DNA of 64,000 bases, taken from the NCBI GenBank assembly GCA_964035545.1, contig OZ037765.1:16554995-16618994 (forward strand). Reading direction: 5' to 3'. Shown one piece after another: positions 2,440-59,210 of the stretch (positions within the stretch are counted from its first letter, which is position 1; each line of letters opens with the position of its first letter). This DNA comes from Bugula neritina. Lineage: Eukaryota; Animalia; Bryozoa. The notes beneath the pieces were generated by a model. It was not told the DNA's origin, searched no databases, and saw only the letters and a program-made list of their open reading frames with translations. The translations under genes were made by a program, and so were the position numbers.

Positions 2440-3966
2440 GTAACAAAGTTAGAGCAAGAGCCATGATGTGTCCTGTAAATGGCATGAGCAAGGGTCAACC
2501 AGTACCCATGTGTTACCGTAGTCTGTCTATTGGAACAGGGACTGAAGTTGATCTCTGTCTCACAGACTATGGGCACTGCAATCATGTCAGCTCCAAGCAT
2601 GCGCATATGTTCTATGATGAGGTTAGATTTGTTTCCCCATCTTTATGGTTATATACAGATATGCGATAGTCATGTCAAACTCTATGTCATATTCATGTAA
2701 GGTGATTTCTCTGCACAGGCGGCTTTATTTATTGTTGTGGTCAGTTAAATGAGATATGTTCAGATGCCTTTCTAGTTAAACCTGTATGTGTGGGATTTAA
2801 TTTTGTGCTAAAGGACACTCAGTGACGTGTGAGTAGCTTAGATGAAGTTGTTGTTAGCCTAAGTTCTTATCATGTGGCCGATAGTTGTAGGGCTCAGCGC
2901 TCTTCATGTATTACAAGACAGAAATGCTCCTCATTAGCATTTAGGCTAGAAATTATCCTTCATTTGAATAACTAGTGGAAGGATAGTTATTAGCTTTCTT
3001 GAATAATTTTCAATGGAATTTTATAGATTTAGGTATAAAAAACCTTCATACCCTTTTTAACATTTGTCAACATAACAAAATATTGTAGTGTACTTTAATT
3101 CTTGTTTATTATTATATAACATACAAGTAATACTGCTCGAAAATCATTTTTGAAAAACAGTTTTAACTTGAAAAAATAATAATTGTAATTGCTAATAGAC
3201 CGAATAGCCTCGCAGTCTTTTATTGGCTACAGCTATAGCCCACAGACTCCGTGTTCTAGTGCTTAACCCTAGATGTTGGTTCCATTTCATACCATCTTTC
3301 CTGTCTCTGTAGTTAAGCAAGCAGTTTGAGATACTCAACTACAGTGAGCACGGTACGGTAGTCAACAATGTGCTCTACAGCTGCGACTTCTCACCCAAGA
3401 CTTATGGTGGAGAGGATGAGGCTCCAGCTGATGTTGCTGCTATAAAAAAGATGGTGAAAGAGCGTCTACCAGACATTGATGTTATGTCTGCTAAATCAAC
3501 AAAAGTATGTTTTTTCTCAAACTTTCAATTATCTGTTGACAGGGAAAGCTGCATGTGTCATGCTGTGCAATTAGCTAAGTGCTTTTTTGTTGACGGCAAC
3601 AAATTTACTAACTCTGAGTTACAACCCGAGTATTTGTGTTAACCTTGACCTCTGTAGCCTATATACTCTTCCTCCCAGCAGCTGTTATCAACTTACCATA
3701 TCTGGTTTGTTATCCAGAATGAGAAGCTATGTAACTGTAAAGGAAGCCCTGCAGCTTTTATTGGCCCGAATGGTGCCGGGTGGGAAGGCACGGCTACTCT
3801 GCATCATGGTGCTCACATCAAGTTCGGTTGCCTACAGTTTGTGTTCAGCATAGTGGATAGCGACACTACTACAAGCATTAGACCAGATGTGAGCGTGGCC
3901 AGTCTACTGAGAGAACAATATAACACCTCACTACTTCGAGGCAACCAAACGTCTTTGGCTAGTTAG
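2440..3966 (+). CDS. PHF12: PHD finger protein 12, last three coding exons (C-terminal FHA domain); 5' part lies outside the window
   Basis: Exons 2440-2621, 3313-3504 and 3718-3966 (GT-AG, phases consistent) encode VRARAMMCP...[38 protein letters not shown]|[27 protein letters not shown]...CNCK...[27 protein letters not shown], which matches the PHF12 FHA region. AATAAA at 4144-4149. Confidence 0.95.
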
Positions 3967-5190
3967 TGAATTTAGTTCATATACATATTCTAAGTATAGG
4001 CTGAGTTTTTTTTATGTTTTCATTGGTTTTTAACCTGCAATTGCTATGAATAGTCAACTGTAAATATATATTATGTTGTTATACATTATTATATTAATTT
4101 TTCACAATTCAGTGTAATTAATACTGTAATGCAAGTGAATGTTAATAAATCTTTGTTTAAAAATTTAACATATAAATAACTGTTGCTCTCTTACTATTAG
4201 ATAGCACAATGTTTTGCAATGTTCAAATTTTATAACGTAGTTTTTTCTGATGGTTGTAATATTGGTTCCTAAAATATCTGCTGCGTGTCTTATTGGCTAA
4301 AGTATATTTTAGTTTCATCCCCTCTATTTTATTACCTGCATTTGAGAAGTTGTTTGTTTCCACTTTTTAAACTCCATTCACTATAAGTACTACATAACAG
4401 TTACGCTTTTTTATCAAGAGCTCCTACAACAGCTCCATTTGCTTCTAATGAGTAAAAAGCTAGTCATGTAATCTTTATTATACTTGAGGGAGCACTGCTA
4501 TATGGTCTTTTCTCCCAGTCTATTAGAAAAGTCGATTAAATTTAAAAAGAGAAGCGTTGAGATGCTATGCTTTGTTTTTGTTATTGCTTACTATGGACTT
4601 AACAGTGGATGTTTTGTTGGGTGTAGGATTGCGTGACTGTAAATACAATAGGGTATATTGAATAGACTGGCTTCTTCAGTATCTGCCAACATCAATAAAC
4701 CTGTGTCTTGTAGTACAAGCACTTGAGTGGTTGTAGAAGTCTGCCTATATACAGCTACAGTACTCATCTCTAGCTAATATTCATAAAACACTTTCTAAAC
4801 CTTGTCCTTGTGCAGAATGTTTCAAGTGAACATAACGTAAAATTTCTACTATATTAGTTAGTGGGCTGATTGGAAAAACTATTGATTCTAAACTCACTAA
4901 TAGGAGTTGGATTTATTAGCTAAAGGTCTATTATACCTGACAAGTTGCATGTAAGTGAACACTTTAATTTATTTACTTTTCCTTTTAATTTTAATTGAGC
5001 CAAATTAATTCTTTGAAAGTGTATTATGGCTGTGGTGAATGGCAATATTTTTGTTTTGCCTATAATTTTAAAGTAACATTTATGGGCGAAACCATGAGGT
5101 TAGCCAATAAGCACTTCATTGCTCTTTCTTGCCAAGATCTAGCATGACTTTCAATAATGTCAAATCTTGCAGTTTGGGGACACATTTTAT

Positions 5191-50273: not shown

Positions 50274-52362
50274 CATTGACAATCCGCATTAGGAATAAAA
50301 TGATATCAATACTACAAACAATGCAATCGCGTTTTTACTAAAAAGAGGGTGTGTCATAAGCAGGCGGGTCTTGTAAAGATGGGTAAACTGTCCACTCAGC
50401 TTTCTGTATTGCTAAAGCCACTGCGCTATTTACAGAGCTTTGGTATAGATACCCCGCCTTTTGATAACACGGAAAGAACCTTATAATAGACATTGTTCCT
50501 TCTAATATATATATATATAATTATAATATTATAGTTAAAAATTCGGAAGGGGATAACTTAGTACTAGCCAGAGCTATCTTAGTATTATTAGCACCACCAT
50601 TGTTAGTTGTTACCAAACTATATTTCAAATGCATTAACATATTATACATTGGAAGATCTGGTATCTGGTATCAAGCTCATTAAATCTTGGTGTACTGGGT
50701 AAAATTATTTTGTTAGAGCCAGGCTAAATTGCAATAAATTATTTTTATTCTCTTTGCCCCTTTGCTGATCCCATATCATAGGTATATTATTGAATATTAT
50801 TATATTTATCAATTGCAGTTGGAAAAAAATACTTATTTCATGATAATTATTATAACCAAAACATTTGCCTACTCACTATATTATTTTATTCCATAGTATA
50901 TACTTACTTATTTCAACAACAAAAATAATATGAATAAAAAAGTTGACAAATTGTAAAAAGTAGTATTGGAAACAGAAGTAAGATAATCAGAAATCTGTAC
51001 CCACCCTAACTTAAATAACTATAACTTACATAAAATTCTGCAAATTTAACTGCAAAATAGATGCTTCTGCGAAAAAATAGTTGTACAATTTTTGCAATGT
51101 GCATTATTTTATTTTATATCCTAGGTTCATGTGCCTGGGTTCATTTTTAATATATCTAAATTAAATCTTTGAAAATTGCCGTTAAAAATAACATGTTTGC
51201 AAGTAGACTATAAAGGCTTTTGTTATAAGAAAATGAATGAGTTAGTTATTTGGCAGTTGGGTGATTATGTAACATATAGAATTGGTAAATAACCCTGAGT
51301 TGGTTGAGTAACTTATACTGATTAGTGTATCTAGCCAAATGTTTAGCCTATTCATTTTTCTCTAGTCCATAATGATGAACTTGTTTACCCAGAAAGGGAG
51401 ATTAGAGTGAATACTATTTAGGCTTTTTAACATCATCTTTTTATTTTATGAGATGGCAGCTCTGTAACCACTGAATATGCTGGCCTTTGTAATGACCTCC
51501 CCTCAGTCCATTGCTTATGCACATAGCACCAATACATATATGTACATATTGGCAATCCGAAGCCATCAAGTAAATATGTTGTTATCTTTTATTTGTTTGC
51601 CTAGTTTGTCTTAGGCAGGGAATAAATATAATGTTCAAATGTTAAATAAATGAAATGGTGCCCTAGGGCCTAGACCCATGATTTACGACAGACATTATGT
51701 AGATTGTAGAGCAAATCACTATTTTCGTTATTTCTTGGATCAGTTGAAAGGGGTAAGCTCTAACTCTATACAAGCAAACTGAAATAAGGCATTTGCCATA
51801 TCAGTCAAATGAGGAGCTGTGGAATTTATTTATTTAGAATTTTATCTATCTAGTTAAATGCTTTAAAAATTGGTAGGTTATAATGGTGGTGAGTTGAAAT
51901 CAAATTAAGTTACCATTTATACATATATAATTTAAATAATATAGGCAAGGTTAAGAATGAAAACCAACTGGATTGAAAACCTCTAAATTTTCATATGCAC
52001 ATCTAATAGAGTAGTCATTATTCATATGTATGATGAACACCAGAGTCAGTTTTGTCTTAATTATACTCTTGTCTCTATTTGATTTAGACTATTAGATTTA
52101 AACTGTTGACATCACTATTTTTGTAAAAGATATTGCTGCCAAAGCAATAATTTAGTTCGAGGTAACTTCATAATATTATAATATAGGCTATTATATGTTG
52201 AAATATTATATATATATATATATATATAATATATAATGTATGCTGATTGTCAATCTAGTTGGAGTTCCAGCAAAGTAAAGTGCTCGATATCACGGGTGAC
52301 AGAGCTAATATAATGTAGTGTGTTCAGATTGTTACTGATACATATATATTTTATTTAAAAAA

Positions 52363-52415
52363 TCTTACACGACTATATAGTTTCGTGCAGTAAACTGCAC
52401 TCCTCAGGTGTTAGA
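52363..52415 (-). ncRNA. Minimal type I hammerhead ribozyme
   Basis: Minus strand reads UCUAACAC-CUGAGGA-GUGCAG-UUUA-CUGCAC-GAAAC-UAUAUA-GUC^GUGUAAGA. The CUGANGA/GAAA core is complete, stem II is 6 bp, stem III is palindromic (ACUAUAUAGU), and stem I is ACAC/GUGU plus UCU/AGA. Predicted cleavage is between 52371 and 52370. Confidence 0.9.
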
Positions 52416-53011
52416 CTAAAAATAAATAAAATCTATGAAGCATACCGATTATTCAAATTTTTACATAAAGAAAACTATCATGCTAAACACAACGTAAAAC
52501 GAAATGCAAACATAGTAGTGGATTTGGTGTTATCTATTAATTAATTAAATTGCTCTTTTTCTAAAGGATTAAACTATAAAAGCTAGATGTTTGATGGAAA
52601 GGCTAATTTATAATAGGTAGTACTATGGTTGAGAGTTGTTAGTATTGTTATGTGATGTTGCCCAGGTAGTGCTTACGTGCATGTCTGCATGTGGATAGAA
52701 TTTCATTTCTGTTATTAAGGGAAGATTTGCTGGGCTGGTATATTATGAAATATTTTTCCCATAGGCAGAGGTTGCATCTTTTAGTGACTTTGTTGTATGA
52801 GTTGGTCTTTTTCATAATTTTCCATGTTATGTCAAAATGGGTGTTCTTGTCTTTTAGTTTCCAGATATATTTGCTCAATTCAGTATGGTTCTTTTTTGTT
52901 TTGTTGTTAAAAGTTGATTTGTGGTTATAAAATCTGGTTTTGAATTCTGTTTCTGATGTTCCCACGTAAGTCTGGGGTTGGCTGCCATCTTTGGTTGTAA
53001 CTGTAGCTTGG

Positions 53012-53549
53012 TGTCACAAAACTGTTGGTAGCAGTGTGACGAGTTCGAAAAGTCTGGTAGTCAGAAGTGTATAGACAAGTAGTATACAGCTTGCTAATCC
53101 AGTTGTGAATAAATAGAGTTGTGGATATAAGTATACTTTATTTCTCTAGTAAGATATGCACAGATGAATGTATTAAAATGAACTCCAAGAATGAACTGAT
53201 TCGTAAACACAACTGCCTCAGTATTTATAGTAAACAAAACACTCTAGAACATTCTCAAGCATTCCAGTATAGAAGATTCTAGTAGAAAACATTCTCCACA
53301 TGCCAATACTATTTATAGAAAATCAAAACAAAACAAAACATTGGAATTTCCATGGTTATTTCGCAATTATTGCGCAATACCTTGTTTACATTGCTGGGCA
53401 GTAGTTAACATGACTAACCAAAACAGTAACAATGAACAATGACCCATCTCTTTGATTAGTCTAGAATATTTATGAACATTCCTGTATAATCATTAGGAAA
53501 AACCCGGTAAGTCTATTTATAGGTATATGTACACTCAGAATTTGTGACA
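53012..53549 (-). repeat. 3' LTR
   Basis: Direct repeat of 58153-58690, preceded on the minus strand by the polypurine tract AGAATGGGGGGT. Confidence 0.97.
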
Positions 53550-53595
53550 ACCCCCCATTCTAAGAGAAATTATCTTGATCATTTCTCCTAACTAC

Positions 53596-56500
53596 TTAAA
53601 ATTCTGAGTCAATTCGGCTTAGATAATCGGCTCCAACATTGTCCTTTCCTTTGATTGACTCCACCTTGATTCTGAAGTTCTGTAAATACATAGCCCATCT
53701 CATCACTCTGCTGTTCTCAAATTTGGCCTGGTTGATGTACACCAGCGGTTGGTGATCAGTCTGCAGCACGAACTCCACTCCATATAAATATTGTAGATAT
53801 TTCTTGACCGCCCATACCACAGCTAAGCATTCCTTCTCTATGGCTGAGTAGTTTCTCTCTCGGTCTAGTAATTTCCTGCTTGCGTAACTCACAGGGAACA
53901 GCTTTCCATCCTGAGGCTGCATCAGCACTGCCCCTAGCCCAACATCTGATGCATCAGTCCTCAGCACAAACGGTTTGTGTACATCTGGTAATTTTAAAAT
54001 TGGCGCACTTGTCAGCATTGTTTTTAAGCTGGTGTACGCCTTCTCTTGTGGTTCCTGCCATTTGACTTTCTTTGGTTCTCCCTTCTTTGTTAAATCTGTT
54101 AGTGGACTCGCTATAGTTGAATAATGAGGGATGTATTCTCTGTAGTAACTAGTAAGTCCAATGAACGATCTCACTTGCGTCTTATTGGTTGGCCTTGGCG
54201 CAGCCCTAATTTTCTCAATGTTGTCATCCATTGGTTTAATTTCACCCCTGTAAAGTTTATGTCCGATGAACTCCATGTTTGTTCCTCCTACTCTACATTT
54301 ACTCGGTCTAACGGTAAGTCCAGCTGTGGCAAGTCGGCTGAAAACTTCTGTTAGCATTTTAACGTGTTCTTCCCAACTTTCCGTGTGCACTAGAATGTCA
54401 TCAATGTAGTTGTCCACTCCTTTCAGATTTTCAAAAAGTTTTCTCAACCCTCTCACCAGTGTCGCTCCAGAGTTAACCATCCCAAATGGCATCTTGATGA
54501 ATTCATAATGTCCATCGGGTGTCACAAATGCAGTTTTAGGAATATCTTCTTTCTTCACTGGTATTTGCCAATATCCCTTGGATAAATCAAGTTTGGTAAA
54601 GTATTTATCTTTACTGAGCTTTCTGAAGACGTCATCTGTTTTCACCATTGGTTCAGGATCGAATACTGAGACTCGGTTTAGTTTGCGATAGTCTATACAA
54701 ATCCTGTTGCTTCCATCTGGCTTCTTTACTATCACCGTTGGTGAGGCGTAGGGAGAGGTAGATGGCCGAATAACACCCATCTTCAACATGTCCTCGATGT
54801 CCGCCTTGAGAGTCTCTCTTACCCTGTAGGGCAATCCATATGGTTTGGATTTCACTGGCTCATCAGTCGTGAGCTTGATAGAATGTTCTATTCCCGTTGC
54901 ATTTCCTGGCAAGTCACTGAAGATACCTTCAAACTTTCTTAGTAACTCCTCCAGCTGTCTTCTTTGCTGATTCTCCAGCTCTTCACCCAGAATGACATCT
55001 TTGCTTGTTTCTGTCTGCCGTTTCTTACTGTACAGGTCCAACAAATCATCTTGGCCTTCTTCTCTTTCCTCATCATGATCAATAACTCCAGTACCAGCAG
55101 CATCTAAAGTCATCACAGCTCCAACAGTCATAGGGTCGGTAGGCGCCTCCCGCTCAAAATATTTCTTCAGCATGTTGGCATGGTATGTTCTCCTCTTGCC
55201 TCTAATGTTGATAATGTAGTCATTCAGTCTGACTTTCTCCTCAATATTGAATGGTCCTTGCCAATGCATCAGCAATTTATTTCCATCCGTAGGTAGAAGA
55301 ATGAGCACTTTGTCACCAGGTCTGAAGTCTCTCTGCTTAGCTTTCTTGTCAAAATAGTGTTTGTATCTTTTTTGACTGTCTTTTAGCGAAGCTAGTGCCA
55401 TTTCCATCATGTCATCTAAACGCTCTCTCAATTCAAAAACATGTTGATAGCAGGTCTTGACTTCATCGGCAGTGTCTTCTTTTGTCCAAAGTTGTCGCAG
55501 GATGTACATTGGTCCACGCACAGTTCTTCCATAGAGTAACTCGAATGGGGCGAAGCCTGTTGATTCCTGTGGGACTTCTCTATATGCAAATAGAGCTGCA
55601 TTGATGAACCGATGCCACTGTCTTGGCTCTTTAGCACACAACTTTTTTAACATACTCTTGAGGGTTCCGTTGAACTTTTCCACAAGTCCATTGGCCATTG
55701 CATGGTATGGTGAAGTAGGAAGTTGTCGCATGTCAAGTAATCTGGTAAACTCTTTCATGTAATCCGAGATGAATTGAGTTCCTTGGTCGCTTATCACCTC
55801 CTCTGGTATCCCAACACGACTGTACATGTCAAGCAGCGCTTCAGCTACAGTAGCTGAGTCAATGTTCTTCAATGGTGTAGCTTCAGGGTATCTTGTAGCA
55901 TAGTCAACTAAAGTTAGGATGTAGCGGTGTCCTTTCTCACTTGGAGGGTTAATTGGTCCGATTAGGTCTATTGCACATCTCTTGAATGGGGTGTCAATTA
56001 GTGGAGTTTCCTGTACTGGAACTTTCATGACTGAGCCTTTTTTCACCGTCTTCTGGCAAATGTCACATGATTGACAGAAACGTACGACATCTCCGTTTAG
56101 TCCTGGCCAGAAGAAGTTGGAAAGCACTCTATCAGTGGTTTTCTTTACTCCTAGGTGTCCGCTCATTATGCAGTCATGAGCTTTTTGTAGAACTTCCTTC
56201 CTCAGTGAACTGGGTACCATGAGTTGTTTAACAGGTTTTACACTGGCAGACTTCGAGTCGGTGTACTCACGGTACAGAATCTTATTCCTCACCACAAACC
56301 TAGTGGTGCATCCCTTTTTCTCCTTCACTTCTTTTGCATAAAAGAAACGTTCCAATGTGGGGTCATCCCTCTGCAATCTGGCTATTTCATCTTTCCCTAT
56401 ACTTAATGGGTTAGTATTTGAATCAATCTTCAGTGGTTTGTCTCCTGACTTTTCCTTGACAGCCTGAGCTCTTGTGGTTACGGCGCAGTCCTTCCAGTTT

Positions 56501-58056
56501 TCCAGTGGCTGGTCAGCTGATCTCGCTCCATCCACATTCCCAATGAGCAGGTCACAAATCGTCTTGTCCATTACTGCAGCTTTGACGACACCATTGTAAA
56601 ATGGTGAGCGCACTGAGATAAGTGCCCACTGAGCCTCTCTAACACTTGCATCAGCCATATTCAGATAAACTGATTCTCCAGTTAAATGTTGAGGTTGCAC
56701 ATACTTTGCATTGACTACAATGCAACCACAGCCGGTGTCGCGCATTACAGTAGCTCGTTGGCCATTGACTTCCGCATCAAATATTGCTGTGCCCCCATCT
56801 TTGAATTTAGGTCCATTCTTGCAGACAGCAGCGTTGACAAACTTTTTACCATTAACTGTGATTTCCGTAGGTTCTTCCCCTTTAGATGAGATTCCTGGAT
56901 CTGTGACCACAGTCTTATTCTGAGTAATCGCTATTGCAGCAGCAGCATGCACTGACCTCCTACCATACTTTCTGCAGTCGGAAGTATTGTGGTTGTTCAT
57001 CTTGCAATGTGAACAGTACTTCTTCCCTCGCCGTGGGCAATTACGAGCAATGTGTGACTTATCTTTGCAGATGAAACATGCACCCTCACTTTTACTTCCT
57101 TGTTCAGCATTCATGCTACCGGTGGGTGTGTTTTCCATCCTTTTTATATTAGTTTTCTTAGTCTTTGCTAGTTTTCTTCCACGGGCGTGCAAAAACAGTG
57201 ACGCTGCATCACACATATCCTCACTGCTGTTGTAGGAACTTTGCTTTAAATGCACAGCTAGGTCGTCTGGGCATGATGATATAAATTGTTCAGTCGCCAC
57301 TAGTTTGGCTATGTCCATGCCCCCTGAAAGTTCTACCCACTTGTGCACATAACTTTCTATCCTAGTGAACAGTTGGGCAGGAGTTTCATCCTCGTAAGCT
57401 TCTGCCTCTCTGAGCTTTTTTCTGTAGCCCTCTTGAGTCAAGTTAAAGCGCTCCAACAAGGCTTCTTTGACTTTTTTATAATCTCTACGATCGGTAGGTG
57501 ACAACCGGATGTAAGCTTCTGTTGCTGTACCCCTTAGGTACTGACTGAGATGGTAGGGCCAATCTCCCTTGTCCCAATTACATCCTTCGGCAACCCACTC
57601 GAACCGCTCTAAATAGCTATCCATTTCGTCCACCTTCTCATCAAAGAATGGTATTTTTGGTTTTGGTTTGTTAGCTATTTCTAACCTGGTGTTCTCATGT
57701 CTTGAGTGCTCCAAACTTGTGTCAGCTTTCAGCTTTTCCATATCTAATTCATGTCGTTGTCTTCTCTCTTCTGCCTCCTGGTCAGCTTTAACCTTGAGTG
57801 CCATTGCCTCCTGATCAGCTTTAACCTTGAATGCCATTGCCTCCTGATCAGCTTTTATCTTCATCTCCATTAAGGCTTTCTCATTCTCTTGCCTGATCTT
57901 TTCTGCCTCACGCTCTAATCTACGTTCCTCTCGGTCCTTTTCTTTTTCTTCTTGTGCAGCAACAATGGGTAGGTTCTTTTCAACAAAAGCTATGAGCTTG
58001 TCCTCCACCAACCCAAGGTCTTTACCCATCTGTGTCACTCTCTCCAACAACGCCAT
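53596..58056 (-). CDS. Gag-Pol polyprotein, 1486 aa: coiled coil, SCAN-like capsid, 2x CCHC knuckles, aspartic protease, integrase (HHCC, DDE, GPF), reverse transcriptase, RNase H
   Basis: CFICKDKSHIARNC and CSHCKMNNHNTSDC; RDTGC; HDCIMSGH...CDIC, IDLIGP, SDQGTQF, NGLVEKFN, WQGPF; then ICIDYRKLN, LDLSKGYWQ, MPFGM, YIDD; then TDASDVGLGAVL, EKECLA, TDHQPL, ADYLSR. Confidence 0.97.
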   Translation of the reverse strand: MALLERVTQMGKDLGLVEDKLIAFVEKNLPIVAAQEEKEKDREERRLEREAEKIRQENEKALMEMKIKADQEAMAFKVKADQEAMALKVKADQEAEERRQRHELDMEKLKADTSLEHSRHENTRLEIANKPKPKIPFFDEKVDEMDSYLERFEWVAEGCNWDKGDWPYHLSQYLRGTATEAYIRLSPTDRRDYKKVKEALLERFNLTQEGYRKKLREAEAYEDETPAQLFTRIESYVHKWVELSGGMDIAKLVATEQFISSCPDDLAVHLKQSSYNSSEDMCDAASLFLHARGRKLAKTKKTNIKRMENTPTGSMNAEQGSKSEGACFICKDKSHIARNCPRRGKKYCSHCKMNNHNTSDCRKYGRRSVHAAAAIAITQNKTVVTDPGISSKGEEPTEITVNGKKFVNAAVCKNGPKFKDGGTAIFDAEVNGQRATVMRDTGCGCIVVNAKYVQPQHLTGESVYLNMADASVREAQWALISVRSPFYNGVVKAAVMDKTICDLLIGNVDGARSADQPLENWKDCAVTTRAQAVKEKSGDKPLKIDSNTNPLSIGKDEIARLQRDDPTLERFFYAKEVKEKKGCTTRFVVRNKILYREYTDSKSASVKPVKQLMVPSSLRKEVLQKAHDCIMSGHLGVKKTTDRVLSNFFWPGLNGDVVRFCQSCDICQKTVKKGSVMKVPVQETPLIDTPFKRCAIDLIGPINPPSEKGHRYILTLVDYATRYPEATPLKNIDSATVAEALLDMYSRVGIPEEVISDQGTQFISDYMKEFTRLLDMRQLPTSPYHAMANGLVEKFNGTLKSMLKKLCAKEPRQWHRFINAALFAYREVPQESTGFAPFELLYGRTVRGPMYILRQLWTKEDTADEVKTCYQHVFELRERLDDMMEMALASLKDSQKRYKHYFDKKAKQRDFRPGDKVLILLPTDGNKLLMHWQGPFNIEEKVRLNDYIINIRGKRRTYHANMLKKYFEREAPTDPMTVGAVMTLDAAGTGVIDHDEEREEGQDDLLDLYSKKRQTETSKDVILGEELENQQRRQLEELLRKFEGIFSDLPGNATGIEHSIKLTTDEPVKSKPYGLPYRVRETLKADIEDMLKMGVIRPSTSPYASPTVIVKKPDGSNRICIDYRKLNRVSVFDPEPMVKTDDVFRKLSKDKYFTKLDLSKGYWQIPVKKEDIPKTAFVTPDGHYEFIKMPFGMVNSGATLVRGLRKLFENLKGVDNYIDDILVHTESWEEHVKMLTEVFSRLATAGLTVRPSKCRVGGTNMEFIGHKLYRGEIKPMDDNIEKIRAAPRPTNKTQVRSFIGLTSYYREYIPHYSTIASPLTDLTKKGEPKKVKWQEPQEKAYTSLKTMLTSAPILKLPDVHKPFVLRTDASDVGLGAVLMQPQDGKLFPVSYASRKLLDRERNYSAIEKECLAVVWAVKKYLQYLYGVEFVLQTDHQPLVYINQAKFENSRVMRWAMYLQNFRIKVESIKGKDNVGADYLSRIDSEF

Positions 58057-58132
58057 AATGTCTCAACAACTGTTAATTAATCCTGTGTATACTCACGTTG
58101 TAACTAATAACTTCCCTGTGTGCGACTGAGAC

Positions 58133-58150
58133 TTCCCGGAGCAGCCCCCA
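58133..58150 (-). promoter_or_regulatory. Primer-binding site, tRNA-Pro-like
   Basis: Minus strand TGGGGGCTGCTCCGGGAA, 2 nt after the 5' LTR; the canonical Pro PBS is TGGGGGCTCGTCCGGGAT. Confidence 0.75.
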
Positions 58151-58152
58151 AT

Positions 58153-58690
58153 TGTCACAAAACTGTTGGTAGCAGTGTGACGAGTTCGAAAAGTCTGGTA
58201 GTCAGAAGTGTATAGACAAGTAGTATACAGCTTGCTAATCCAGTTGTGAATAAATAGAGTTGTGGATATAAGTATACTTTATTTCTCTAGTAAGATATGC
58301 ACAGATGAATGTATTAAAATGAACTCCAAGAATGAACTGATTCGTAAACACAACTGCCTCAGTATTTATAGTAAACAAAACACTCTAGAACATTCTCAAG
58401 CATTCCAGTATAGAAGATTCTAGTAGAAAACATTCTCCACATGCCAATACTATTTATAGAAAATCAAAACAAAACAAAACATTGGAATTTCCATGGTTAT
58501 TTCGCAATTATTGCGCAATACCTTGTTTACATTGCTGGGCAGTAGTTAACATGACTAACCAAAACAGTAACAATGAACAATGACCCATCTCTTTGATTAG
58601 TCTAGAATATTTATGAACATTCCTGTATAATCATTAGGAAAAACCCGGTAAGTCTATTTATAGGTATATGTACACTCAGAATTTGTGACA
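58153..58690 (-). repeat. 5' LTR
   Basis: Direct repeat of 53012-53549; TATAAATA and AATAAA on the minus strand. Confidence 0.97.
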
Positions 58691-59114
58691 CTTGGTATAT
58701 GATGCACTTTGTGAGGCATTTTCCATCTAGTGGGCACACTGTGCTGTTTCTGCAGTTACATTCTCGAGGAGGTTGGTTTGCTGGGTTGAGTAATCTTTTA
58801 TTGTGGCTGTTGATTATGTTGTTTAAATTTCTGCAGCAGCTGTAACTGAGTTTTATGTTGTTTTTGTTGAAAATTTTGTAGAGTTTGTGGTCTTTGGGTA
58901 TTTCTTCCTCCAGAATTTTAAAAAATTGTTTTCCCAGGTTGCTTGATACACTTTTGGAGAATGGGGGGTTATACCATGTGATGTTTCGTCGTCTTTCTCT
59001 TTTTGGTCTGCTAGTGGTGTGTGTTAGCTGGAATGTTAGGTTATGTGTGTATCCACTTTTACTTAGAGCTTCTTGGTGTATTTTTGTTGTTTGACTGAAG
59101 ACTTCTTCGTTAGA

Positions 59115-59116
<2 letters not shown>

Positions 59117-59210
<94 letters not shown>
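59117..59210. repeat. (TA)n microsatellite (~47 units) at the truncation point of the Penelope-like element
   Basis: Directly visible. Confidence 0.97.

Follow-up and report, generated by a model that had tools for sequence, protein, structure and literature searches.

Among the Ty3/Gypsy long terminal repeat (LTR) retrotransposons, the Gmr1-like elements are set apart by Gypsy-type enzymes combined with an integrase (IN) positioned upstream of reverse transcriptase (RT), following the definition of Goodwin and Poulter (2002) as relayed in PMC3587641, PMC6238403 and PMC8220671. Their layout has more recently been given as SCAN (the capsid C-terminal domain)-protease (PR)-IN-RT/RNase H (RH) (bioRxiv 10.1101/2025.03.03.638093). 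Such elements were reported in crustaceans in 2013 (PMC3587641) and in the annelid Lamellibrachia in 2021 (PMC8220671); Gmr1/Osvaldo elements, one family of them heat-induced, occur in the flatworm Macrostomum (PMC12801592), and a 2021 survey placed Gmr1 among five Gypsy clades that are present in several phyla (PMC8556966). For bryozoans, repeat libraries are scarce, the Flustra genome paper gives LTR elements only as a class (PMC13326412), and our literature search found no paper mentioning Gmr1 in this phylum. Here we describe an element from the bryozoan Bugula neritina, located in a 64,000-bp stretch of contig OZ037765.1 (assembly GCA_964035545.1, positions 16,554,995 to 16,618,994 of the forward strand), hereafter the window. 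It is an LTR retrotransposon of 5679 bp that occupies window positions 53012-58690 on the minus strand. We consider it very probable that this is an autonomous Gmr1-like LTR retrotransposon of the Ty3/Gypsy group (Metaviridae), and that its family was transposing until very recently and also mobilised a derivative that lacks RT.

An integrase-first Gypsy polyprotein

A first-pass annotation, made from the letters of the window, had read here one uninterrupted open reading frame (ORF) of 1486 aa with the order Gag-PR-IN-RT-RNase H, and had assigned the element to the Gmr1-like group on the strength of Gypsy-type enzymes in a Copia-like order. Both readings stand: translation and Pfam scan agree on the frame and the order, the motif positions hold, the three profile families that the annotation had named for a domain scan (rve, RVT_1 and RT_RNaseH) are all matched, with the integrase first, and the domain scan, the Ty3 structures and the collinear homologues concur on the class. 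In the ORF, Pfam places SCAN at aa 209-292, Integrase_H2C2 at 614-670, rve at 690-785, RVT_1 at 1110-1268 and RT_RNaseH at 1358-1461 (RT_RNaseH and RT_RNaseH_2 together span 1333-1461), so that IN precedes RT. The protein as a whole reads Gag, with two capsid (CA) lobes, the second of them SCAN-like, and two CCHC knuckles, followed by PR, IN, RT and RNase H, and all catalytic motifs are present.

The integrase carries the HHCC residues H627, H634, C661 and C664, the DD35E triad D697, D757 and E793, and a GPY/F module, here GPF, at 55249-55263 with W932, G934 and P935; in an alignment with 24 homologues, all of these residues are invariant. The RT motif YIDD is found at aa 1217-1220 (54397-54408), and the RNase H residues D1368, E1407, D1434 and D1477 lie within 53626-53955. 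The putative protease has its predicted active-site D440, within DTG, at 56737-56739 and an LLIGN motif at 56536-56550, and R439, D440 and G442 are invariant in the same alignment.

The comparison with solved structures tells the same story from another side. Residues 1056-1481 match the Ty3 RT/RNase H 4OL8, the best solved relative (E 2.6e-81), as well as residues 584-1008 of the Ty3 Gag-Pol 7Q5B, and residues 611-967 match residues 1088-1445 of 7Q5B in addition to the foamy-virus (PFV) integrase (3e-25). The enzymes are thus of the Ty3/Gypsy type, and, as the two Ty3 matches stand in swapped positions, their order is permuted relative to Ty3.

The order PR-IN-RT-RH is that of Copia, and on this ground the element might be taken for a Ty1/Copia element mistaken for Gypsy. 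We give this reading hardly any credence, since the RT matches RVT_1 and not RVT_2, the RNase H corresponds to RT_RNaseH plus RT_RNaseH_2, Integrase_H2C2 is present, a GPY/F module follows the integrase core, and, among solved structures, Ty3 is the best match to RT-RH. Moreover, the RT of this element matches Gypsy families of canonical RT-RH-IN order in the same genome at 1e-47 to 1e-57, and the Pfam scan of the ORF returned neither RVT_2 nor gag_pre-integrs nor any Copia Gag family at E<=0.01. Features of BEL/Pao elements were similarly lacking, with neither Peptidase_A17 nor a BEL-type RT in the Pfam scan and with the order IN-RT-RH. The parts of the element, in window coordinates, are as follows.

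53007-53011, no strand: left copy of the target-site duplication (TSD), CTTGG on the plus strand; these 5 bp are in single copy at paralogous empty sites
53012-53549, minus: 3' LTR, 538 bp, with TG...CA ends, 100% identical to 58153-58690
53550-53561, minus: putative polypurine tract, sense AGAATGGGGGGT, adjoining the 3' LTR; read from the sequence, with function suggested by position
53596-58056, minus: single Gag-Pol ORF, 1486 aa plus stop, by translation; the N-terminus is kept in homologue P0001
53614-54891, minus: RT-RNase H, aa 1056-1481, by Ty3 4OL8 and Pfam RVT_1, RT_RNaseH and RT_RNaseH_2
55156-56226, minus: integrase, aa 611-967, by Pfam Integrase_H2C2 and rve and by the PFV integrase and Ty3 7Q5B matches
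56497-56766, minus: putative aspartic protease region, by motif and position
56974-57078, minus: two CCHC zinc knuckles, nucleocapsid part of Gag, by sequence motifs; zf-CCHC in 12/25 homologues
57181-57432, minus: second capsid lobe, SCAN-like, aa 209-292, by Pfam SCAN and AlphaFold2 model
57415-57678, minus: first capsid lobe, aa 127-214, resembling the retroviral CA C-terminal domain (CTD) and the Arc N-lobe, by model alignment
58133-58150, minus: primer-binding site (PBS) TGGGGGCTGCTCCGGGAA, 2 nt past the 5' LTR, the 18-nt complement of the host tRNA-Pro(CGG) 3' end plus CCA
58153-58690, minus: 5' LTR, by identity to the 3' LTR; U3/R/U5 limits are putative
58691-58695, no strand: right copy of the TSD, CTTGG; in single copy at paralogous empty sites

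The stop codon (53596) and the 3' LTR (53549) are separated by only 46 bp, the polypurine tract included, and this leaves no room for env; no env-like ORF was found there, nor any other ORF of at least 100 aa within the element. The G+C content of the element is 43-44%, compared with about 32% in its surroundings.

The capsid lobes of Gag

The Gag region taken by itself gave no sequence match to solved structures, and the reading of its SCAN-like lobe comes from profiles and modelling. The two CCHC knuckles lie at aa 327-340 and 348-361. Upstream of them, Pfam SCAN hits this copy at E 3e-5, a little short of the gathering score; of 25 collinear homologues, 22 are matched as well, with a best E-value of 5.2e-12. 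An AlphaFold2 model of aa 125-320, built from an alignment of 25 homologues (mean predicted local distance difference test score, pLDDT, 87), folds into two helical lobes. The first of these (aa 127-214; model 3-90) resembles the CA-like CTD of PEG10 (Z 8.9) and, at Z of about 8, the CA-CTD of Rous sarcoma virus and human immunodeficiency virus (RSV/HIV) as well as the Arc N-lobe. The second lobe (aa 207-293; model 83-169) aligns with the SCAN domain of ZNF24 (3LHR) over 86/92 residues (Z 9.0, root-mean-square deviation 2.9 A) and with those of PEG3 (4BHX; Z 8.6) and Zfp206 (4E6S; Z 8.1). All these Z values, from VIA-align, are middling for helical domains, and the corresponding Foldseek E-values are weak, all >0.05. 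The SCAN-like character of the predicted second lobe is nevertheless supported by the convergence of the whole-domain Z match, the coinciding Pfam hit and the presence of that hit in 22/25 homologues.

Relatives and clade membership

A word-based search with aa 600-1486 as the query retrieved 3106 homologous proteins at E<=1e-10; for each of the best 120, the alignment takes in 98-100% of IN-RT-RH. Because a single local alignment runs over the whole of IN-RT-RH (887 aa), these best 120 homologues share the integrase-first order, which was verified in 23 of the 23 homologues that were checked. The collinear, integrase-first relatives span cnidarians, molluscs, crustaceans, bryozoans, hemichordates and tunicates, with identities of 65-68% for the bryozoan Watersipora subatra, 62% for Saccoglossus, 60% for the coral Oculina, 59% for Penaeus and for Ciona, and 58-59% for the gastropods Littorina and Babylonia. 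A closer cluster, 81% identical at full length and 90% over Pol, includes a GenBank protein of Bugula neritina itself; the best match of this relative (KAF6033439.1) in the genome searched here is at <=84%.

This breadth bears directly on whether the permuted order could have arisen locally, through rearrangement of a canonical Gypsy element, or as an artefact of its assembly. The only thing that speaks for such an origin is the rarity of the integrase-first order among Gypsy elements. Set against this rarity are about 20 RT-bearing copies with the same order in one open frame, spread over nine chromosome-scale contigs, and thousands of proteins from other phyla that are collinear over 887 aa, so that the probability of a rearrangement or artefact appears to be negligible.

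Quick maximum-likelihood trees, unrooted and built separately for RT-RH and for IN, place the integrase-first proteins (Ciona, Saccoglossus and others) apart from the canonical Gypsy families of the host, the latter represented by two families in three rows, with support in SH-aLRT, an approximate likelihood ratio test of the Shimodaira-Hasegawa type, of 100 for RT-RH and 97 for IN. Within the integrase-first group, the element joins the cluster that contains the Bugula protein and then Watersipora (SH-aLRT 99 for RT-RH and 88 for IN).

The first-pass annotation had suggested that the element, if found in a protostome, would be a useful record of the range of the clade or of horizontal transfer. 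Bryozoans are protostomes. On neither count did the suggestion prosper: Gmr1-like elements had already been reported in protostomes (PMC3587641, PMC8220671), and both the RT-RH and the IN trees group the element with other bryozoan elements. A recent transfer of the family into this bryozoan from another phylum nonetheless deserves to be weighed, given that Pol identity is uniformly about 58-62% to the cnidarian, mollusc, crustacean, hemichordate and tunicate elements, that the deep branches of the trees do not track host phylogeny, and that the family is small and young. We regard it as very unlikely, for the nearest relatives are bryozoan (the Bugula neritina cluster at 81-90%, then Watersipora subatra at 65-68%, with SH-aLRT 99/88), no non-bryozoan sequence is closer than 62%, and the PBS is an exact fit to a tRNA-Pro variant specific to this host. 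Searched by pattern, the host genome yielded one tRNA gene ending in ...GGTTCAATTCCCGGAGCAGCCC (G000:C2:7716150-7716221), followed by a T-run and identified by ARAGORN as tRNA-Pro(CGG); the PBS TGGGGGCTGCTCCGGGAA is complementary in 18/18 nt to its 3' end plus CCA, whereas the commoner host tRNA-Pro(UGG) genes have two mismatches in the same stretch. This exact fit implies that the element is matched to a tRNA of this host. Thus, the element is a well-preserved member of a known clade, the extension of the range is small, and nothing suggests horizontal transfer; the known range and origin of the Gmr1 clade are left unchanged.

Genome-wide, candidate loci for Integrase_H2C2 and RT_RNaseH numbered more than 1000, many of them within open frames of 1300-2000 aa. 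It follows that this compact 216-Mb genome holds many apparently intact Gypsy families, both of canonical order and integrase-first.

Insertion and recent activity of the family

The LTRs, which the first-pass annotation had judged identical by eye, are 538-bp direct repeats (53012-53549 and 58153-58690) with 100% identity and 0 differences in exact, base-by-base extension; they start with TGTCACA and end with TGTGACA. The perfect TSD that it had reported is equally real: the 5 bp CTTGG stand on both sides (53007-53011 and 58691-58695), and paralogous empty sites contain them once. The insertion lies within one copy of a high-copy repeat (window 52192-53011 and 58691-59117), such that both flanks consist of that repeat, and in paralogous uninterrupted copies the match of the left flank and that of the right share exactly 5 bp, the single target copy. 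Such sites are C9:3218441-3219684 (flank matches C9:3218863-3219684 and C9:3218441-3218867) and C6:9254779-9256022 (C6:9255201-9256022 and C6:9254779-9255205). This overlap is independent confirmation of the element's ends as well as of the 5-bp duplication. A search of the genome with both flanks for an allelic empty site returned only paralogous ones, because the target is a high-copy repeat. The interrupted repeat copy is 99-100% identical to its paralogues, and the target itself is therefore young. The target repeat has dozens of copies at 96-100% identity, often arranged as inverted pairs.

The LTR contains TATAAATA at LTR positions 29, 233 and 321 and AATAAA at 408. A block resembling a heat-shock element (HSE), GGAATGCTTGAGAATGTTCTAGAGT, lies at window 58382-58406 and 53241-53265, 12 nt upstream of TATAAATA in the LTR; it comprises three perfect and two imperfect nGAAn units just upstream of the TATA box. 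Over 24 copies, the block is 98% conserved, compared with 95% for the whole LTR, and its variants are confined to the spacer bases between the GAA/TTC units.

The search for further copies covered 216 Mb in 321 contigs, with the window on contig 1. The RT segment has 20 copies at about 98% identity, plus only a few older fragments, which puts the copy number, one of the checks that the first-pass annotation had proposed, at about 20 RT-bearing copies. All 14 full-length copies that were examined have perfect 5-bp TSDs and the same LTR ends; 10 of these show 0 LTR differences, and 12 retain an ORF of at least 1471 aa. Copies diverge from each other by 1-3% in coding sequence and by 3-9% in the LTRs. 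Among 12 intact copies, the ratio of non-synonymous to synonymous divergence (dN/dS) is 0.13 at dS 0.065, falling to 0.10 in IN and RT-RH and rising to 0.69 in the IN-RT linker, and such low values imply that the differences arose in replicating lineages under functional selection rather than after insertion. When full-length and RT-less elements are taken together, the LTRs of 17 of 24 do not differ at all, and the LTR pairs of all 24, about 12.7 kb, contain 5 substitutions in total; for the copy in the window, 0 substitutions in 538 bp set a 95% upper bound of about 0.56% on LTR divergence. The insertions are far younger than the divergence between the copies.

Could the copy instead be old and inactive, with LTR identity owed to gene conversion or to a very low mutation rate of the host? 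Copies differ from each other by 2-9%, yet their own LTR pairs are identical, a pattern that LTR conversion could mimic. We consider such an age improbable: not only do 17 of the 24 elements lack any LTR difference while most ORFs are intact, but the differences between copies are strongly biased to synonymous sites (dN/dS 0.13), as in lineages that replicate and unlike those of decaying copies, the target repeat is 99-100% identical to its paralogues, and degraded copies of the RT segment are very few. Recent activity of the family appears well supported by these sequences, and the view of the first-pass annotation that the copy is very young and potentially active is borne out by LTR identity, by the analysis of the copies and by dN/dS.

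An RT-less Gag-PR-IN derivative

The by-product of most interest is an abundant RT-less Gag-PR-IN derivative of the same family. It is represented by at least 10 copies of 4344-4392 bp that share one common deletion and are about 1307 bp shorter than the full-length element; the loci examined are G000:C8:1541722-1546093 (L016) and nine more (L017-L025). The deletion joins element position 3677 to 4976 at an imperfect 9-nt microhomology, takes out RT and most of RNase H, and shifts the frame; what remains is an ORF for Gag-PR-IN that measures 1039-1046 aa and carries a 34-residue tail. Owing to the permuted order, a single 3' deletion yields an element that lacks RT/RNase H and still encodes Gag-PR-IN. 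The derivative is also young: LTRs are identical in 7 of the 10 copies examined, and those of C8:1541722-1546093 are identical to the LTRs of the copy in the window. Since young RT-less copies require it, a working RT source must have acted very recently. The PR-IN segment has 69 candidate copies (40 of the 40 that were scored are at 98-99% identity), as against 20 copies of the RT segment, so that copies of the derivative outnumber those of the autonomous form about two to one (about 45-50 vs 20).

Trees of the two halves of Gag-PR-IN conflict: the derivatives are interleaved among full-length elements in the tree of the first half, whereas that of the second makes them nearly monophyletic, a pattern that indicates recombination between the RT-less and full-length forms. 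In the half next to the deletion, the derivative clade has 41 synonymous and 37 non-synonymous variants, for a ratio of non-synonymous to synonymous polymorphism (pN/pS) of 0.25. This value is well below neutrality and points to purifying selection on PR-IN, although recombination with full-length copies may contribute. It is conceivable, if rather doubtful, that the derivative is a stable 'satellite' retroelement, dependent in cis on a Gag and an integrase of its own and supplied in trans with the polymerase only.

Two further arrangements were observed. At G000:C9:6247889-6260717, four RT-less units follow one another in tandem, each period of 3876 bp comprising the internal part plus one LTR, and form an LTR-sharing array. 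A third size class (C9:4863187-4867688, C6:14445888-14448431 and C1:6102931-6105473) retains IN and RT, although its open frame is no longer than 893-895 aa, with an LTR spacing of about 3950 bp, and is probably a different, 5' deletion derivative.

Assessment and proposed life cycle

Several points weigh against our interpretation and should be taken together. Membership in the Gmr1-like clade is argued from the defining architecture, the SCAN-like Gag and the collinear homologues, including that of Ciona; the trees were built without the Gmr1 of Gadus morhua or GyDB references, and their contrast group is only the two canonical-order families. The protease is a putative one, assigned by motif and position, and Pfam protease families yield a weak match in only 1 of 25 homologues. 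Present-day activity is deduced from sequence, and identical LTRs could, in principle, stem from gene conversion.

With these reservations, an autonomous, recently active Gmr1-like element suggests the following life cycle. Copy numbers, LTR identity, selection on the ORF, the tRNA match, the homologies and the anatomy are observed in the sequences, whereas the steps of transcription, processing and particle formation, and transposition at the present day, are inferred. The genomic RNA would be driven by the 5' LTR; one Gag-PR-IN-RT-RH polyprotein would be translated without a frameshift and cleaved by its own aspartic protease; and Gag, with its two capsid lobes and two zinc knuckles, would package the RNA. 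Two primers would then serve reverse transcription, namely the host tRNA-Pro(CGG), bound at the PBS, and the polypurine tract, and the integrase would insert the DNA copy via a 5-bp staggered cut. On this account, the copy in the window is a very recent arrival within another young repeat, and its small family of about 20 RT-bearing copies, active until very recently, also mobilises the more numerous RT-less deletion derivative.

A complete, annotated bryozoan element of this kind, with its boundaries, tRNA-Pro primer, SCAN-like Gag and catalytic motifs, could be used as a reference when repeats are annotated. Furthermore, the combination of a small, young family, its diversity shaped by selection, with an abundant RT-less derivative offers a convenient natural system for the study of trans-mobilisation in LTR elements of Copia-like order.

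Other observations on the window and the assembly

Scans of the whole window for tRNA and for Rfam families returned no matches. Neither the 1486-aa protein nor five other ORFs of the window had an exact entry in the protein collection searched, and the other large ORFs of the window had no Pfam matches. The assembly contains several distinct COX1 genes: that on C321 and a nuclear copy at C6:11174072-11175412 have 9 TGA codons each, that on C17 has none, and those on C214 and C73 have TGA codons. This set is consistent with the mitochondrion of the host, an insert of mitochondrial DNA in the nucleus and organisms that were co-assembled; the assembly also includes ciliate contigs.

Comparison with known systems

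The element can be set beside several characterised systems. The SCAN domains of vertebrate proteins (ZNF24 3LHR, PEG3 4BHX and Zfp206 4E6S) share the predicted fold of the second Gag lobe, at Z 8.1-9.0; there, they are domesticated dimerisation modules of the host, carried on zinc-finger proteins, whereas here the corresponding lobe is part of a retrotransposon Gag. Ty3 of Saccharomyces cerevisiae (4OL8, 7Q5B) provides the closest solved RT-RNase H and an integrase that is homologous over 357 residues, and it is likewise tRNA-primed and flanked by a 5-bp TSD. It differs in having RT-RH before IN and a gag/pol frameshift, in contrast to the integrase-first order and the one continuous ORF of the Bugula element. 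With Mlig-id38 of Macrostomum lignano, a heat-inducible Gmr1/Osvaldo family (PMC12801592), the family shares a protostome host, the same broad cluster and a copy number of about 20, and the HSE-like block upstream of the TATA box in the LTR is a lead, drawn from the sequence, in the same direction. Finally, there are the Gmr1-like elements, typified by Gmr1 of Atlantic cod, with which the element has in common Gypsy-type RT, RNase H and IN, the position of IN before RT, a SCAN-like Gag followed by PR-IN-RT/RH, and the lack of env; what sets it apart from them is the phylum of its host, Bryozoa.

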